Source: Macrostomum lignano (lineage: Eukaryota). Taken from it: a stretch of DNA of 64,000 nucleotides. Numbering within the stretch: position 1 is the stretch's first letter; every line of letters begins with the position of its first letter. Position numbers and translations under genes: made by a program. Below the pieces are notes generated by a model. It was not told the DNA's origin. It saw only the letters and a program-made list of their open reading frames with translations, and did no database searches. The stretch covers positions 186,001 through 250,000 of the forward strand of contig NIVC01000040.1 of the NCBI GenBank assembly GCA_002269645.1. The letters run 5' to 3'. This document shows, piece by piece, positions 8,428 to 41,917 of this stretch.

Positions 8428-8844
8428 TTAAGCGTGCTCCAGCTTCACTTCTGTTGATGAAGCGTGAAGATGCTGCTGCTGATGCTGTAACATCATGTGA
8501 TGCTGAGTTAAGTGATGCTGCTGTTGCTGCTGCAGTTGATGATGCTGCTGCTGCAGCTGCTGATGAGGCATCAGATGCGATGCAGCAACCGCTTCAGATA
8601 ATAACATATTGGACATTGATGACGGACTGCCCAGCTGCACCGCACCGTCCTTGAGGCTGCCGCTGTTATTGTTATTATTGTTGTTGTTGTTGTGGCAGAT
8701 GTTGCTGAAATCCTGCTCAGAGTGAGCACTCGAAATGTCCGCAGCCGCAGCCGCCGCCGCTGAAGGCTTCGAACCTCCGCCGCCGCCGCTGCTCTTCTTC
8801 TGTCGGCGCTCCTTGGCACGGCGGTTTTGAAACCAGATCTTGAT
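8428..8844 (-). CDS. Cdx: Cdx exon 3 (homeodomain helix 3 IKIWFQNRRAKERRQKK + N/Q/H-rich tail, stop)
   Basis: Acceptor cccgcag|ATC AAG ATC TGG TTT CAA AAC, phase 0, matching exon 2. Continues in frame into ORF 8428..8640. Confidence 0.93.
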   Translation of the reverse strand: MKIWFQNRRAKERRQKKSSGGGGGSKPSAAAAAAADISSAHSEQDFSNICHNNNNNNNNNSGSLKDGAVQLGSPSSMSNMLLSEAVAASHLMPHQQLQQQHHQLQQQQQHHLTQHHMMLQHQQQHLHASSTEVKLEHA

Positions 8845-10775: not shown

Positions 10776-10924
10776 CTGTCGCTCGGACAAATGCAGAATG
10801 CCGGACAATTCTGATTTTCTAGCCGAAGTTATGTACTTCTGATAGTGATACTCCTTTTCCAGCTCAAAGCGCTGCTGGGAGTTGTACACCTGCCTGTATT
10901 TGTCTTGAGTCCGAGTTTTCATCT
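10776..10924 (-). CDS. Cdx: Cdx exon 2 ([48 protein letters not shown])
   Basis: Cdx-diagnostic KTRTxDKYR motif plus homeodomain helices 1-2. Acceptor tttcag, donor CAG|gtgagt. Both intron positions match vertebrate CDX genes (just before KTRT; between Q44 and residue 45). Confidence 0.95.
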
Positions 10925-13574: not shown

Positions 13575-15410
13575 TTTAGTCTCCTGACTCTCCTATCTAT
13601 ATCTAGTCTCCCGATTGACTCTCCTATCTATATCTAGTCTCCTGACTCTCCTATCTATATCTAGTCTCCCGACTCTCCTATCTATATCTAGTCTCCCGAT
13701 TGACTCTCCTATCTATATCTAGTCTCCCGATTGACTCTCCTATCTATATCTAGTCTCCCGATTGACTCTCCTATCTATATCTAGTCTCTTGATTGACTCT
13801 CCTATCTATATCTAGTCTCCTGACTCTCCTATCTATATCTAGTCTCTTGATTGACTCTCCTAGCTATCTTTAGTCTCCCGATTGACTCTCCTATCTATAT
13901 CTAGTCTCTTGATTGACTCTCCTATCTATATCTAGTCTCCCGATTGACTCTCCTATCTATATCTAGTCTCCCGATTGACTCTCCTATCTATATCTAGTCT
14001 CCCGATTGACTCTCCTATCTATCTTTAGTCTCCCGATTGACTCTCCTATCTATCTTTAGTCTCCCGATTGACTCTCCTATCTATATCTAGTCTCCCGATT
14101 GACTCTCCTATCTATATCTAGTCTCCCGATTGACTCTCCTATCTATATCTAGTCTCCCGATTGACTCTCCTATCTATATCTAGTCTCCCGATTGACTCTC
14201 CTATCTATCTTTAGTCTCCCGATTGACTCTCCTATCTATCTTTAGTCTCCCGATTGACTCTCCTATCTATATCTAGTCTCTTGATTGACTCTCCTAGCTA
14301 TCTTTAGTCTCCCGATTGACTCTCCTATCTATATCTAGTCTCTTGATTGACTCTCCTATCTATATCTAGTCTCCCGATTGACTCTCCTATCTATATCTAG
14401 TCTCCCGATTGACTCTCCTATCTATATCTAGTCTCCCGATTGACTCTCCTATCTATCTTTAGTCTCCCGATTGACTCTCCTATCTATCTTTAGTCTCCCG
14501 ATTGACTCTCCTATCTATATCTAGTCTCCCGATTGACTCTCCTATCTATATCTAGTCTCCCGATTGACTCTCCTATCTATATCTAGTCTCCCGATTGACT
14601 CTCCTATCTATATCTAGTCTCCCGATTGACTCTCCTATCTATCTTTAGTCTCCCGATTGACTCTCCTATCTATCTTTAGTCTCCCGATTGACTCTCCTAT
14701 CTATATCTAGTCTCCCGATTGACTCTCCTATCTATATCTAGTCTCCCGATTGACTCTCCTATCTATATCTAGTCTCCCGATTGACTCTCCTATCTATCTT
14801 TAGTCTCCCGATTGACTCTCCTATCTATATCTAGTCTCCCGATTGACTCTCCTATCTATATCTAGTCTCCCGATTGACTCTCCTATCTATATCTAGTCTC
14901 CCGATTGACTCTCCTATCTATCTTTAGTCTCCCGATTGACTCTCCTATCTATATCTAGTCTCCCGATTGACTCTCCTATCTATATCTAGTCTCCCGATTG
15001 ACTCTCCTATCTATATCTAGTCTCCCGATTGACTCTCCTATCTATCTTTAGTCTCCCGATTGACTCTCCTATCTATATCTAGTCTCCCGATTGACTCTCC
15101 TATCTATATCTAGTCTCCCGATTGACTCTCCTATCTATATCTAGTCTCCCGATTGACTCTCCTATCTATATCTAGTCTCCCGATTGACTCTCCTATCTAT
15201 ATCTAGTCTCCCGATTGACTCTCCTATCTATATCTAGTCTCCCGATTGACTCTCCTTTCTATCTTTAGTCTCCCGATTGACTCTCCTATCTATAGTCTCT
15301 GACTCTCCTATCTCTCGTCTCCCGACTCCTATCTTTAGTTTCCTTTCTGTAGTCTCCCGAATCTAATACATGTATCTAGTCTCCAATTTTACTATCTCTA
15401 GTCTCTCAAA
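13575..15410. repeat. 31-bp minisatellite (Cdx intron 1)
   Basis: ctagtctcccgattgactctcctatctatat, highly homogeneous, about 1.8 kb. Confidence 0.97.
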
Positions 15411-15504: not shown

Positions 15505-16315
15505 CACAGCTGACCCGTCGCTTCTGCCGCCACGATTTGATCATCTCCTGCTGCAGCCGGGTCGCCTCGCGAACGTCCATCACGTCGTCCATCGGATCGT
15601 CTTGGTGCGGCGGCGACAGGGCCTCGTCGGAGGAGGCCTGGTCTCCCGTCACCACCGGGTTGGGCAGCGAGGAGGCAGCCGCGGCGGCGGCAGCGGCTAC
15701 CGCGGCCGCGGCTGCTGAAGAAGCCGAAGTGCCTGTCGATGCCGCCACCGACGACTGCTGCTGGGTGCGGGCGGCGTTGGCAGACTGGAGACTTGATGCC
15801 GACGAGGTCAGCGGCAGCGGCGCCGCGGCCGCCGCCGACCAGTTTGTAGCGCAGGCGGCGTGCATCGAGGATGTCAGCGGCCCCGCCAGGCTACTGCTCG
15901 CGGCTGCTGCAGCTGCGGCGGCGGCAGCTGCGGCGGCGGCTGCAGCAGCGGCTGATGGAGTTGAATTCTGTGACTGATGCTGCTGCTGTTGCTGCTGCAT
16001 CAGCGAGCTCATATTTGCTGAGTTGCTGAAGTTATAAGCCTGATGCTGATGCTGCTGGTTGTGATGAGGCTGCTGCTGTTGATGATGCTGGCTAGGGTGG
16101 AGTGGGTGCTGCTGCTGCAAAGGAAGCTGATGAAGCGCGCCGGGATGCTGCACGCACAGGCTGCAGAGACAGGGCCCAGCTGACGGATGCTGCTGGTGCT
16201 GTGAAAACAGCAGGTGATGCGGCTGAGCCGGAAACTGGTACTGCGGCTGATTGGCGGCCAGGAAACCTGCACCGGAAATGGGGCTCCAGGAGGACGTGCT
16301 AGACATGGCTGCCAT
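15505..16315 (-). CDS. Cdx: Cdx exon 1 (Q/H/A/S-rich N-terminal region, ends ...MIKSWRQKRRVSC)
   Basis: ATG at 16315, 811 nt, donor G|gtgagt. Phase 1 matches exon 2 (G+AG = Glu). A Trp lies at the hexapeptide position. Poly-Ala/poly-Gln composition is typical of transcription factors. Confidence 0.85.
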
Positions 16316-16716
16316 TTGCTTTCAGTCAGTGATGAAGAGCTTTTGTTAATTGGGGGAAAACTTTGTATAATTAGAAGTGTCAACAAGGCGGGGAGTTGCG
16401 GAGCAAAGAGAAATTGATCCACAAACCACAATCCAACTGGATATTAACAGGTAGCGGCCAGGTAGTTGAGTTTGGTTTCTCTGCCTTTTCGCTCTCTCTC
16501 TCTCTAACTTGTCTTTCTTCTTTACACAGAGACGCCGACACGGAGCGAGTTGACTGTTTCTATATTAAGTGAGTGAGACCACTTCAAGTTCTGCGCTCTT
16601 GGGCGGCGGGACCACCTATTTTAACACCCCCCCCCCCCCGCTGTGAGAGTGGGGTGTGGGGTTTCGGAGTCAGAAATTAGAGAGGGAGGAGGTGCAGGAC
16701 GGAGGTGGGGCAGCGG

Positions 16717-17030
16717 TGGCGGCGGCGGCAGCGGCGGTGGCGGCGGCGGCAGCGGACAAGAACAGAAGATCAAAGGAAGCCGCTCGGACGCTATTGGCTC
16801 CGCGCGCTGGGTATGAGGGGGGGCGGGAGGGGAGGGAAGGGGAGGGCAAGACTGGAGCGCGGCCCTCTAAACTATGAGAGTATCAGTGGCATTATGAGGT
16901 GGCGTGGCTTTTTGACCGCCGGCCCACCTTTTCCTGGACTTGACTCTCTCCCCCCTCTCTCTCTCCACCCCCTTTCTCCCCACCCCCACCCAAGCGCCGG
17001 AGTCCGTTTGATCTCTGCCGCCTAATTAAC
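16717..17030 (-). promoter_or_regulatory. Cdx proximal promoter with CCAAT box and TCF/helper-site pairs
   Basis: AGATCAAAGG at 16767-16776 beside GGCGGC runs at 16717-16751. AGCCAATAG on minus (ATTGG at 16793-16797). CGTTTGATC at 17005-17013 followed by GCCGCC at 17017-17022 and TAATTA at 17023-17028. Confidence 0.5.
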
Positions 17031-17509
17031 AGACGAGTTTGCGGACCAGTGGCCCAGTGCTAGACTGCTAAAGCTAGGCTTGGGGAGGCCTGCCCGCCGG
17101 CGTATAACTGGCTAGGAGCTGGTTCAGCCAACCAAAAAAGGGCAGTTCTTCTAAAAGCCTTCTAAAGCTGGACTATTGGAATTCTCCGCCCCCGGGTCCC
17201 GTTGTATGTGTGTTGGTCTTGGACCCCCTGTCGGTTTTATATCACCTTTGGTTGGAGCCAGTGGAAGCCAAGCCTTGGGATTTGGCACAGCGCTCGTGAG
17301 GGGTTGAGGGGTGCAGCTGTAAGCAACTGCATCCCCTTCCAAGTTCCTTTCAAGTTCCTTGAAGCCAAGGGGAACTAAAAAAGGCCTTGAAAATGCCCCG
17401 ACGTTACAGAGTACTTACAGACTAAAGACAGGAAGGCCTCCCAAATTTATACTATTGCACTGGACTCTAAAAAGCAGCTGAAATCCGAATGAAACGCCTG
17501 AACTTCAAA

Positions 17510-18645
17510 TGACACACTTGGAATCCGAATGAAATAACCGGAATCCGAATAACACACCTGGAATCCTAATGACACATCTGAACTTTTAATGACACACCTG
17601 GAATCATAATGGCACGCACACCTGGAATCCTAATGACACACCTGGAATCCCAATGGTACACCTGAAATCCTAATGACACACCTGGAATCCTAATGAAACA
17701 CCTGGAATACTAATATATGACACCTGGAATCCCAATTACACACCTGAAATCGTAATGACACACCTGGAATCCTAATGACACACCTGAAAACTGGAATCCT
17801 AATGACACACCTGAAAACTGGAATCCTAATGACACACCTGAAAACTGGAATCCTAATGACACACCTGAAAACGAATCCAAATGACACACCTGAAAACTGG
17901 AATCCTAATGACACACCTGAAAACTGAAATCCTAATGACACACCTGAAAACTGGAATCCTAATGACACACCTGAAAACTGGAATCCTAATGACACACCTG
18001 AAATCCTAATGACACACCTGAAATCCTAATGACACACCTGAAATCCTAATGACACACCTGAAAACGAATCCAAATGACACACCTGAAAACTGGAATCCTA
18101 ATGACACACCTGAAATCCTAATGACACACCTGAAAACGAATCCAAATGACACACCTGAAAACTGGAATCCTAATGACACACCTGAAATCCTAATGACACA
18201 CCTGAAAACGAATCCAAATGACACACCTGAAAACTGGAATCCTAATGACACACCTGAAAACTGTAATCCTAATGACACACCTGAAATCCTAATGACACAC
18301 CTGAAAACGAATCCAAATGACACACCTGAAAACTGGAATCCTAATGACACACCTGAAAACTGAAATCCAAATGACACACCTGAAAACTGGAATCCAAATG
18401 ACACACCTGAAAACTGGAATCCAAATGACACACCTGAAAACTGAAATCCTAATGACACACCTGAAAACTGGAATCCTAATGACACACCTGAAAACTGGAA
18501 TCCAAATGACACACCTGAAAACTGAAATCCTAATGACACACCTGAAAACTGGAATCCTAATGACACACCTGAAAACTGGAATCCTAATGACACACCTGAA
18601 AACTGGAATCCAAATGACACACCTGAAAACTGGAATCCTAATGAC
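17510..18645. repeat. 27/20-bp minisatellite
   Basis: aatgacacacctgaaaactggaatcct and shorter variants. Confidence 0.95.
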
Positions 18646-19340
18646 GTTAGGTTTGCCGAGTTTCGCAGTGGCCGAGCGTCGCTTGAAGACGCAGCCCGGC
18701 CTGGGCGTCCTGTGACTGCCACGTCGGATGCGGACGCAGCTGGTGGACGAGGACTCACGACTGACGGTGCAGCAAATAGCCACTGTCCTGGGTATCTCAT
18801 CGGGAAGTGTCACCACAATCCTGCACAAGCGGTTGTGCCTGAGCAAGGTGTCCTCATGATGGGTCCCCCATCACCTGACTGAGGGTTGAATGGTGCCGCT
18901 CCATGCTGCGCAGGTTCAACGGCGGCAGCTCAAACTCGGTGTCTGAGGTCGTGAGAGACCTGGGTGTACAGCTACGACAGCTACCCTGAGTCCCAGCAGC
19001 AGTCGGCGCAGTTTCTGCAGCAGCAGCGAGTGCAGCAGCTCGGCCACTCGCCGTAGGCGTACAGCCCTGACCTCGCACCGTGCGACTTCTTCGTGTTCCC
19101 TGCGGTAAAGCGGCAGCTGAAAGGAACTCGATTTGAGTCGCCAGAGCAGGCTCAGGGCTTCTGTGAGCGACTCGAGGGGATCCCGCATTCCGAGTGGTGC
19201 AGCTGCTTTGTCACTTGGTTTACGAGGATGCAGAAGTGCATCGATGCTGCTGGGGACTACTTTGAGAAGTAGCGCACTGAGTTTTAGTTCTTGCTGCTAT
19301 AGTGGCCAGTCGTGTCCGGAAATTTATTGAACCCCCCTCG
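18646..19340 (+). mobile_element. Decayed, 5'-truncated mariner (DD34D) transposon
   Basis: Broken frames give FRSGRASLED..RPGRP (HTH), KVSS*WVPHHLT, ETWVYSYD, YSPDLAPCDFFVFP and GDYFEK*. The 3' TIR reads ...aatttattgaacccccctcg followed by TA at 19341-19342. Stops, frameshifts and internal deletions are present. Confidence 0.92.
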
Positions 19341-24099: not shown

Positions 24100-24860
24100 G
24101 ACAGGGGAGGCTGTGAAGTGACAGTGAAGGCTGTGGAGTGACAGTGAAGGCTGTGGAGTGACAGGAGGCTGTGGAGTCACAGGGAATGCTGTGGAGTGAC
24201 AGGTGAGGCAGCAGGAATACAGATGAGGCAGCAGGGAGACAGGTGAGGCAGCAGGAAGACAGGTGAGGCAGCAGGGAGACAGGTGAGACAGCAGGGAGAC
24301 AGGTGAGGCAGCAGGGAGACAGGTGAGGCAGCAGGGAGACAGGTGAGGCAGCAGGGAGACAGGTGAGGCAGCAGGGAGACAGGTGAGACAGCAGGGAGAC
24401 AGGTGAGACAGCAGGGAGACAGGTGAGACAGCAGGGAGACAGGTGAGGCAGCAGGGAGACAGGTGAGACATCAGGGAGACAGGTGAGGCAGCAGGGAGAC
24501 AGGTGAGGCAGCAGGGAGACAGGTGAGACAGCAGGGAGACAGGTGAGGCAGCAGGGAGACAGGTGAGGCAGCAGGGAGACAGGTGAGGCAGCAGGGAGAC
24601 AGGTGAGACAGCAGGGAGACAGGTGAGGCAGCAGGGAGACAGGTGAGACAGCAGGGAGACAGGTGAGGCAGCAGGGAGACAGGTGAGACAGCAGGGAGAC
24701 AGGTGAGGCAGCAGGGAGACAGGTGAGACAGCAGGGAGACAGGTGAGACAGCAGGGAGACAGGTGAGACAGCAGGGAGACAGGTGAGGCAGCAGGGAGAC
24801 AGGTGAGGCAGCAGGGAGACAGGTGAGGCAGCAGGGAGACAGGTGAGACAGCAGGGAAAG
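24100..24860. repeat. 20-bp minisatellite filling most of the last VPS26 intron
   Basis: gacaggtgaggcagcaggga, about 35 copies. Confidence 0.96.
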
Positions 24861-24937
24861 GTGTGACAGCAGATTGATGAGACAGTTAGGTAATACCGGA
24901 GTACCGCAATACCTAGCTAGAGAAGCACAACTCTCAC

Positions 24938-25421
24938 CTGCTGTTTAAAGTACCTCCTGTCCTCCTCATCGATAAGCACGAGATTAAGAAAGTAGCGCAC
25001 AGAGAATCTCTTATTAACGTCTCGCATAGTAGGCGTGAGTTCGTAGCCACTGAGAAACAGCCTAATAGGTATAGTCTCGCCTTTCACCGGAGCTCCGTCC
25101 ATGATTTCAAATTTGGCAACGGTCTCGCAGTCGCTCATACTGTTTGGCCCGACTCCAACTAATTCTCTGCGCAGAATTTGCACCTCCATGTGGCGCACCT
25201 TGATTCTAACTAATAGGAAGTAGATTTTACCAATTATGGCGTCCTTCAAATGATATTTCGACTTGTTGTATTCGAATTCAATGTGCAGACAGTCCTCTAT
25301 GCCGACTTCCATTTTGATGCCGCCAAGCGTGTCGGGGTACTGGGCCAGCGTGTGCACCAGGAAGTCCTGCTCTTTAACTAGATCGTTGAGCCGCTTAGTG
25401 ACCGTGACTCTGATGAAGTAC
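24938..25421 (-). CDS. VPS26: VPS26 exon 4 (YFIRV...[26 protein letters not shown]...[11 protein letters not shown])
   Basis: Near-invariant VPS26 motifs. Acceptor ttatcag, donor CAG|gtgaga. Confidence 0.97.
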
Positions 25422-25600
25422 CTGATAAATTTATTATTGATAGCTAAGATATAGCCAATAGCTTGCAATACCTAGGAACCGTCTCGATGAAAACGGTATT
25501 TAGGCCAAGAAGCATCCAATGGAGTCGTTGCAGGGTAACACAGGTAAGATAGGATGAAAGAAGTGACTCTACACGACTCTAAAAAACAGATACTAAAATA

Positions 25601-26764: not shown

Positions 26765-27076
26765 GTCACGGCAGCTGTGCACTCCTGTGTGTGTGTGTGT
26801 GTGCCTCTGCTTATGACTGCATGTGTGCCTGCTCAGGGGAGTCGGCGGAATGGGCAGCGATATGCCTCTCGCTGGTTGTGACAATGTCGCTTAAAGTGCG
26901 CTCAGCCTCAGTGCGAACAAAGCTCCCTGCCTCTGATAAGAAAAATAAAGAGATAAGATGAGAGGGGAGAGGAAAGAAGAGAGTTGAAGCGACATAAACC
27001 GTGAGCAGGCTGGATAGAGAGGCTGCAAATGAAAGAGTATATATACTACATAAACAATAAATAACAACATTCTCAC

Positions 27077-27287
27077 CAATAAGTCCAAGCAGTTCAACCT
27101 TAATTCCATAGTGCTCCATCTTGCTCTGCTTCAATCGAATGTTAACCTTGCCACTGACTGCTTCGCCATCAAAGTACACTGGGCAGGCCTCTTTTTTGCC
27201 ACTATCCAGCAGAACGTCACCTTTTTTCCGGTCATCAGAGCCATCCAGATGGATTTCCAGGTCGGCACTCGGGCCGAAGAGAAAGTT
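27077..27287 (-). CDS. VPS26: VPS26 exon 2 (NFLFGPSADLEIHLDG...YFDGEAVSGKVNI...EHYGIKVELLGLI)
   Basis: Matches the VPS26 N-terminus. Acceptor aaacag (phase 0), donor G|gtgaga. Confidence 0.95.
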
Positions 27288-28783
27288 CTGTTTATTGTTT
27301 TCAAAAAATAAATATATTAACAATGGATATGCGACCAAGTGTTTAGCTAGCAGGTCAAATTGAATCACTTAAGGCACTTTGGTATCCAGTCAAATGATTA
27401 CCACATTGAAGTATATATAGGTTATTTTGTTGAATCTTACGTAGATCTTAACTTTTGAAAAGAAAAATCACTGCCATTATATTCAAATAGTATATGCATG
27501 TTTGTTTTAATTTGACTTAGCCTGACTTAGGTCTATCCTATAGGCCAGGTGTGGATCCAGAAAATTTTGAATGGGGGCTATGAATGAATTCCCTTCCTCC
27601 TCTTCTCCCTGGACTGAATTTAGCAATAGTTATACAGTTTCTTGCTACTCGGACATGCTACTAGAAGTATTGTTGAAGTATATTCCTCAATATATTCCTC
27701 AGTAAGAAAAGAGGGATATTTTGTAAAAAAGTGTAACATTTATTAACATTAACATTAACATTTATCCATATTACAGAGCTCATAGGCCTGACATAACTGC
27801 CCTGTGGGCACAATGAAGGTTGGTGTAGATGGACATCTAGCCATCTATTCACTACAAGCAATTATCGGGACAATCAATTGAAACTTATTGAGATAAAGGT
27901 TTGAAATAAATACACAGTTATAATTAAAAATCAATCTAAAACTAATAATCTATGACTATATAAAATTTTGCGCTGTTTGTCTGTATGTATATCCATTATT
28001 GTTTTATTCAAGAAATGTTGAGCTAATTTTTTCAAATTTATAACCTTTAAAAAATTCCCATTTTTTGGAGATGATGCATAACTTTTTTGATAAAAAAATT
28101 CAAAAATGAAGTTGGTCAAACATTTGAAAAATAATTTTTATTGCTTTTAATAGGTGCTCTGTTTCTAAATTTAATATTGTTTAGTTCAACCATTTGGGCC
28201 TCTCTTTGGCCAATGGACAGTGTGGGATATATATTAAAAACAAAGCTAAAGGAGTTTTATGACCCTTCATGCGGTGGGCTTGCAATTTGTAGGGTTGGTT
28301 GAATTTTATTATTATTTACCAACCAGTCTAATAGACAATTAATGAAAGAGTGGGTGTATAAAGTGGTTAAAAAGCTAGCTTGAAGTTGAAATTTATCAAT
28401 CCCTTAAATGTCTCTGGTCTTGCTATCTTATTTTATAAATATAACACAGTATTCAGAAAATACTACAGCGCAGTTGCAGATAGGAGCAGTAGCTAATGGG
28501 CCCAATTAATTCAGATTCATTTGGCAAATTGGTATATATTATACACAATAAAATTTATAGTAATTGTTAGTGGGTCCAAAGAATTTTACCAATTGTTAGT
28601 GGTAGTGAGTCAAATATTTGAAAAAAAAGTTTTTAATGCCTTTGTAATGTAATAGGCTTCATTTTTAGTAGACTAACTTCTTATGAATGTAAAAAACAAA
28701 ACTCTATTATTTGATATATTGTACAAATATTAGAAATATTTTGCATATTTTATATGTTGAAGTACAGTATATATATCTATGCT

Positions 28784-41538: not shown

Positions 41539-41917
41539 CGCCATGCGAGACCAGTACATGCGCACTGGCGAAGGCTTTCTATGCGTGTTTGCCGTTAATA
41601 ATCCAAAATCATTCGACGACATCGAGCAATACCGCGAACAGATCAAACGCGTGAAAGACGCCGAAGAAGTGCCCCTAGTGCTGGTTGGCAACAAGACGGA
41701 TTTACACGGTCGCACGGTGGACGTTCGCACAGCCAAGCACCTGGCTGACGAGTTCGGCATTCCCTACGTTGAGACCAGCGCTAAGACGCGCCAAGGAGTC
41801 GACGACGCCTTCTATACTCTGGTGCGCGAGATTCGCAAATTCAAAGAGCGCGGCGGCGATAAACGGCGCCGCGGCGGCAAAAGATCAAAGGCCCGGCTGA
41901 GGTGCAGTCTGATGTAA
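41539..41917 (+). CDS. Ras: Ras exon 3 ([13 protein letters not shown]...NKTD...ETSAK...polybasic tail, CSLM*)
   Basis: Acceptor cccgcag|C completes S65. G4/G5 boxes are present. Polybasic region + CaaX with no palmitoylation Cys gives a K-Ras4B-like anchor. Total 190 aa. Confidence 0.96.

Follow-up and report, generated by a model that had tools for sequence, protein, structure and literature searches.

A candidate TCF/LEF site in the 5' flank of a flatworm Cdx gene (Macrostomum lignano)

Whether posterior Wnt/beta-catenin signalling acts directly on Cdx in a flatworm is the question raised by the 5' flank of one Cdx gene of Macrostomum lignano. Macrostomum represents a flatworm lineage that has retained Cdx: homologues are reported in M. 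lignano, while triclads as well as the parasitic groups, i.e., cestodes and trematodes, have lost the gene (PMC4815179). M. lignano expresses wnt-1 at its posterior and in the posterior blastema, and RNAi against beta-catenin blocks the regeneration of the tail and of posterior structures; no switch of head and tail identity occurs, unlike in planarians (PMC12435804). Our literature search found no paper joining cdx to Wnt/TCF in Macrostomum. An earlier interpretation of the locus (the sequence-only reading in the following) had proposed several bipartite TCF elements in the Cdx promoter, each consisting of an HMG site and a helper, and had regarded direct Wnt-to-Cdx wiring as readable in this lineage. 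Here, we evaluate this proposal within the window, which is the complete stretch of 64 kb of DNA that was analysed.

The gene itself is a true Cdx/caudal (ParaHox) paralogue. It is located on the minus strand with its ATG at 16315 and encodes 458 aa in three exons. Exon 1 (coding part 15505..16315) ends at a GTGAGT donor, exon 2 (10776..10924) encodes the homeodomain over its first two thirds, and exon 3 (8428..8844) starts with IKIWFQNRRAKERR and runs to the stop codon. The junction of exons 1 and 2, ...VSC|EMKTRTQ, agrees with ...PNCEMKTRTQ in the M. lignano paralogue P0241, with which the N-terminus can also be aligned, a CxCxxC(V/L)Q motif being common to both. An intron interrupts the homeobox after ...SERQ, i.e., at homeodomain position 44/45 (...CGACAG|GTGAGT, then ATCAAGATCTGG, encoding IKIWFQNRR), and a split at this position is typical of Cdx. 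The protein has a Pfam Homeodomain match (1.3e-17), its best database matches are all Cdx, caudal or pal-1, and among PDB chains it scores best against CDX1 and CDX2 (E = 4e-24, 87 bits); Ftz, the next natural (non-chimeric) homeodomain, reaches 62 bits, and a chain of an engineered Engrailed fusion 77 bits. The earlier assignment to Cdx is thus borne out by domain content, by the nearest sequence relatives and by the closest structures. In the Pfam search, the Caudal activation domain (PF04731) is absent from the N-terminus; since the invertebrate Cdx matches lack it likewise, this domain is not family-defining outside vertebrates. The protein is unusually rich in polyQ, polyA, polyN and polyG. 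With two further Cdx paralogues in UniProt (P0241 and P0009), the species has at least three.

The segment in question, 16717-17030, sits 400-715 bp 5' of the start codon and was correctly described as Cdx 5' flank. A coding function was considered for it and rejected: an in-frame TGA two codons before the ATG renders the segment non-coding, the N-terminus aligns with P0241 as described above, and the open reading frames spanning 16621-17025 give low-complexity translations.

Besides Cdx(-), the window contains VPS26(-) and Ras(+), in this order. Two VPS26 exons (24920-25471 and 26814-27368, minus strand) match Pfam Vps26 with 5e-81 and 1.6e-15. The last Ras exon, on the plus strand, ends at 41917 and shows 100% identity over 126 aa to Macrostomum lignano BOX15_Mlig000663g1. 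The window differs from the NCBI Mlig_3_7 contig bearing the identical Ras protein. NIVC01001668.1:10345-35879 (L001 in the following) encodes an identical Ras protein and resembles the window from 24139 onward. As this resemblance amounts to only 85-95% identity, the window represents a second, diverged copy, either duplicated or homeologous, and a partly duplicated genome has been described for M. lignano (PMC5730564). The 10-kb flank of L001 that was compared with the window ends in VPS26, approximately 8 kb before Cdx is reached. The start of NIVC01001668.1 may be expected near Cdx exon 1 and the promoter region, which may in turn explain why its Cdx protein is absent from the databases. 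A second copy of about 90% identity has little power to judge the conservation of a 10-mer.

Several further features of the locus were recorded. Minisatellites are extremely abundant in the window, as expected for M. lignano. One of them, at 17478-18645, repeats a 20/27-bp unit (CTGGAATCCTAATGACACACCTGAAAA) about 45 times at a distance of 1.2-2.3 kb 5' of the Cdx start codon, with a CACCTG E-box in every unit; it may be a regulatory element or merely one of the many satellites of this genome. Another one, with 42 copies of a 31-bp unit, is located within Cdx intron 1 (14000-15294), and a third (24139-24872, 20-bp unit) adjoins VPS26. Upstream of the last Ras exon, a GC-rich satellite of approximately 4.3 kb extends from about 35.4 to 39.7 kb; its counterpart in the second copy measures only about 350 bp (L001 13554-13909), so repeat length is strongly unlike between the two copies of the locus. 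The plus-strand open reading frames 18526-18879 and 19057-19269 contain ...YSPDLAPCDFFVFP..., which resembles a putative relic of a mariner/Tc1 transposase; Pfam returned no match at E <= 0.001 for either of them. A dUTPase gene and a second gene, of 1422 aa with DNA_pol_B_2 and Endonuclease_7 domains, follow Ras downstream in L001 at a distance of about 9 kb (24440-25535) and look like parts of a Polinton/Maverick-type element. A structured RNA was considered as well; Rfam gave no match at gathering thresholds anywhere in the window.

The consensus HMG motif SCTTTGATS occurs only twice in 64 kb, once in a Ras exon and once upstream of Cdx. The latter, site 1 (CCTTTGATCTT, 16766..16776, minus strand), is located 451-461 bp 5' of the start codon and is identical to the 11-bp HMG optimum of a systematic TCF/Pangolin study (PMC4154663). 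Its plus-strand 10-mer, AGATCAAAGG at 16767-16776, had been named as an optimal TCF/LEF site, and this holds exactly: the match is perfect, and all other motif strings listed in the sequence-only reading were likewise found at their given coordinates.

Close to site 1 there is a helper-like motif that had been overlooked before, GCCGCTC (16779..16785, plus strand), on the strand opposite site 1 and 2 nt upstream of it (arrangement 'AK2'). It fits the human helper consensus GCCGCY as well as the short form RCCG (PMC4154663) and agrees with the fly consensus GCCGCCR at five of seven positions. A helper in the vicinity of an HMG site raises TCF/Pan binding in any orientation, and human TCF-1E prefers the spacings AK2-9 or FF0-11 (PMC4154663). 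The local background for GCCGCT at AK2 of site 1 is 7.9%, a value to be read with the fact that the definition GCCGCY was picked after the sequence had been seen. Assistance by a C-clamp through this adjacent GCCGCT is conceivable, yet we regard it as doubtful.

The sequence-only reading had instead paired site 1 with the tandem TGGCGGC/GGCGGC run, cautioning that this run might be a microsatellite. The caution was justified. Tandem Repeats Finder (TRF) reports a (GGC/GCC)n tract of about 47 bp at 16709..16755 with periods 3, 6 and 9, in which 16713-16755 consists of two copies of a 21-bp unit with 100% identity; such a perfect tandem duplication marks the run as a microsatellite. On the gene strand it comprises six overlapping matches to GCCGCCR (16717-16750). 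The one nearest to site 1 starts 15 nt downstream ('FF15'), with unrelated sequence in between, and no GCCGCCR occurs within 0-12 bp of site 1. Functional HMG-Helper spacings were studied over 0-12 nt, where the FF orientation performs best at 0-2 and falls off sharply beyond, and HMG and Helper sites set far apart gave no activation (PMC4154663). At FF15, the pairing therefore lies outside the known functional range and is not supported as a bipartite element. A helper role of the microsatellite is improbable in our estimate.

A second pair had been proposed at the distal end of the segment, and both of its strings are indeed present (CGTTTGATC at 17005-17013, GCCGCC at 17017-17022) at the ideal spacing FF1. 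The full pair reads CGTTTGATCTC-T-GCCGCCT (17005-17023), and both half-sites are degenerate. The HMG-like 11-mer, site 2 (CGTTTGATCTC, 17005..17015, plus strand), has one mismatch in the CTTTGAT core, since position 2 is G instead of C and the complement becomes CAAAC rather than CAAAG; the helper, GCCGCCT (17017..17023, plus strand, 1 nt downstream), carries T instead of R as its seventh base. That site 2 is functional in any way appears quite unlikely. A palindromic TAATTA of the homeodomain type (17023-17028) overlaps the last base of GCCGCCT (17023); it could be an input for homeodomain proteins, such as auto- or cross-regulation, or a chance occurrence. The third component, ACCGCCG (16915..16921, plus strand), exists as described, but no HMG partner is found within 84 nt, the distances being 84 nt to site 2 and 139 nt to site 1. 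ACCGCCG, like most GCCGCC matches, is a compositional by-product. The claim of multiple bipartite elements is not supported, since it depends on the microsatellite, on site 2 with its broken core and on the orphan ACCGCCG.

Two general promoter motifs accompany site 1. A CCAAT pentamer (GAGCCAATAGC, 16793..16797, minus strand; ATTGG on the plus strand) is located 17 nt upstream of site 1, and its flanks agree in part with the NF-Y consensus RRCCAATSR, with A at the S position; an NF-Y box would be expected 60-100 bp upstream of the transcription start. Another 23 nt upstream of the pentamer, GGGGCGGG (16820..16827, plus strand) resembles a GC box of the Sp/KLF type; it is a motif match within a G-rich tract (16808-16848).

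The segment would be best explained as the GC-rich, low-complexity proximal promoter, and possibly in part the 5' leader, of one Cdx paralogue. In the direction of transcription, a GC-box-like tract and the CCAAT pentamer would be followed by a single putative high-affinity TCF/LEF HMG site, CCTTTGATCTT at 16776..16766, flanked by the opposite-strand GCCGCT at 2 nt and by the (GCC)n microsatellite 15 nt downstream. Posterior Wnt/beta-catenin would then act via TCF at site 1 directly on Cdx, in a similar manner to the mammalian CDX1 promoter. We consider such a direct Wnt input, similar in kind to that of CDX1, plausible and assign it a probability of about 0.45. For the function of site 1, we weighed a prior of about 5-10% for a functional proximal TCF site in a given bilaterian Cdx paralogue against a probability of roughly 1-3% that a perfect site turns up by chance within 1 kb 5' of Cdx, with the Ras copy as empirical floor. 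The outcome is roughly even odds that site 1 is a genuine TCF binding site. As to the wiring claimed earlier, the Cdx promoter, one strong candidate TCF site and the CDX1 precedent speak in its favour, but it cannot be read directly off the DNA. A point against Wnt input is the presence of at least three Cdx paralogues, of which the one studied here is perhaps not the posterior, Wnt-dependent copy, if there is any.

The main competitor, to which we concede a substantial share of the probability, is that site 1 is a product of chance and composition: a lone TCF-like 11-mer in a GC-rich promoter or leader, with the helpers as by-products of GCC repeats and of Ala-Gly codons, and with Cdx driven by the GC box, the CCAAT box and distal enhancers. 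The 10-mer AGATCAAAGG is found twice in the window against 0.27 expected, a count reached in 5 of 100 shuffles. Motif statistics support the chance reading in several ways. The shorter CTTTGATS is not generally enriched (4 in the window, 7.5 expected). TCF sites do not cluster in the Cdx locus, which has 4 CTTTGWW in 9.5 kb (8-17.5 kb), and the 1 kb upstream of the ATG contains only 2 CTTTGWW matches instead of several clustered HMG sites. In this stretch, between 38 and 48% of all positions are no more than 50 nt away from GCCGCC or RCCGCC, which makes the location '15-50 nt from the GGCGGC run' a very lax criterion. Moreover, the Cdx locus alone accounts for 26 of the 39 GCCGCC matches in the window, most of them in repeated codons for Ala or Gly, and helper-like motifs are thus a general compositional feature of this gene. 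The perfect 21-bp duplication in (GGC)n is typical of slippage and occurs in a genome of which 15% consists of simple or tandem repeats (PMC5730564). Site 2 has a broken core, and ACCGCCG is an orphan.

Other figures are less favourable to chance. The expectation of meeting a perfect SCTTTGATS in any one stretch of 1 kb is only about 3%: among 210 9-mers of the same composition, the real motif included, 2.9% are present in the kilobase preceding the Cdx start codon. When this kilobase is searched with the 209 permuted controls, none falls within 20 nt of GCCGCC. We also applied a stricter configuration based on the literature, namely GCCGCY at AK0-9 or FF0-11 of SCTTTGATS. Both SCTTTGATS sites of the window (2/2) show it, compared to 0 of 365 occurrences of control motifs, one of the two lying in the coding exon of Ras. 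The positional background for GCCGCY in this configuration is 0.86% window-wide and 7.9% in the Cdx promoter; SCTTTGATS together with a favourably placed GCCGCY is expected at about 0.2-0.6%. Finally, direct TCF input to Cdx is established in vertebrates (PMC4999783).

The Ras exon serves as an internal control here. That the 10-mer recurs in Ras coding sequence had been pointed out before and is confirmed by a second AGATCAAAGG at 41882-41891. The composite in the last coding exon (41872-41891, minus strand) reads CCTTTGATCTT-TT-GCCGCCG, i.e., the perfect 11-mer and a perfect fly-type helper at the optimal spacing FF2. This is the best bipartite match of the window, better than either Cdx site. 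Its codons specify RRGGKRSKA in the polybasic tail, and the second copy has it unchanged (L001 15490-15509). Its position in a coding exon indicates that such composites arise where an enhancer role is not expected, and it would set an empirical false-positive rate of approximately one per 64 kb (about 1.6% for each kb). On one reading, purposeless composites would occur about once per 64 kb, so that the chance of meeting one in the Cdx promoter would be about 1-2%; on the other reading, the HMG-Helper grammar would be genuinely enriched.

A second alternative accepts the HMG-type motif as real and assigns it to a Sox protein, which would make the input other than canonical Wnt. The core ATCAAAG of site 1 presumably fits the generic Sox consensus WWCAAWG, and nothing in the window separates TCF from Sox. 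On the other hand, the extended match CCTTTGATCTT equals the TCF optimum (PMC4154663), and the helper-like GC motifs nearby are a feature of C-clamp TCFs (PMC4154663, PMC4999783). Use by Sox is therefore very unlikely in our view.

Only slightly more remote is an effect at the RNA level, according to which (GCC)n and site 1 belong to a long 5' UTR whose stable GC-rich structure affects translation, the DNA motifs being irrelevant. Directly upstream of the start codon, the sense strand is free of ATG over 575 nt (16316..16891, minus strand), where dinucleotide shuffles predict 4.0 (P about 0.009) and the antisense strand has 3. This absence of ATG hints that site 1 and (GCC)n may be part of a long 5' leader. 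With such a leader, CCAAT and GC box would come to lie just before the repeat and the transcription start site (TSS), at a place where one would look for a TATA-less TSS. Against this, a TATA-like TTAATATAG at 16568..16560 would set the TSS near 16530, downstream of the repeat, and trans-splicing, which affects 39% of M. lignano genes (PMC5730564), would remove the leader. A transcribed position is in any case no bar to TCF: its binding to DNA is compatible with either position of the TSS.

The most far-reaching proposal, that (GCC)n forms a length-variable array of C-clamp helpers by which slippage tunes the Wnt response of Cdx, within an HMG-Helper grammar that is conserved and enriched in flatworms and with the Ras-exon copy bound as well, is very improbable.

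Direct Wnt input via site 1 would be a regulatory link of an expected kind, for which the evidence consists of motifs. If it holds true, the link from TCF to Cdx would be a concrete downstream effector of posterior Wnt in a flatworm, and the Platyhelminthes would join the groups that have the Wnt-Cdx module, possibly together with the C-clamp/helper grammar. Transgenesis works in M. lignano, and proximal promoters suffice for reporters, tissue-specific expression having been achieved with no more than 2 kb of sequence 5' of the TSS (PMC5730564).

Several known systems can be set beside this locus. Microsatellites of the CGG/GCC class in promoters and 5' UTRs resemble 16709-16755 in that a (GGC)n tract lies near a start codon, here with a perfect internal 21-bp duplication; the tract of M. 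lignano is short (about 47 bp) and is not known to be polymorphic in length or to affect expression. A C-clamp follows the pattern C-X12-C-X2-C-X5-C; the window contains no TCF gene. Most invertebrate TCFs have a C-clamp, and POP-1 of C. elegans is another such factor with bipartite recognition, its helper being GCCRAnW (PMC4999783). The helper consensus drifts between lineages, and hence that of fly or human may not apply to a flatworm. The Drosophila W-CRMs of nkd, Notum and others, bound by TCF/Pangolin, share with our locus the motifs SCTTTGATS and GCCGCCR, with AK and FF both as preferred orientations (PMC4154663). In these modules, several HMG and Helper sites are clustered, whereas M. 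lignano Cdx has no cluster. The Drosophila optimum is AK6 and FF0-2, while the helper of site 1 at AK2 is imperfect and its perfect helpers are at FF15; site 2 has FF1 but a broken HMG core. The mammalian CDX1 and LEF1 promoters need C-clamp TCFs (TCF-1E/TCF-4E) and bear helper-like motifs (PMC4999783). In M. lignano there is one candidate HMG site of consensus sequence, its nearest helper is GCCGCT, and the perfect helpers reside in a microsatellite 15 nt away. What both have in common is the proximal 5' region of a Cdx-family gene, CDX1 in the mammalian case, in which a TCF HMG site is combined with GC-rich helper-like motifs.
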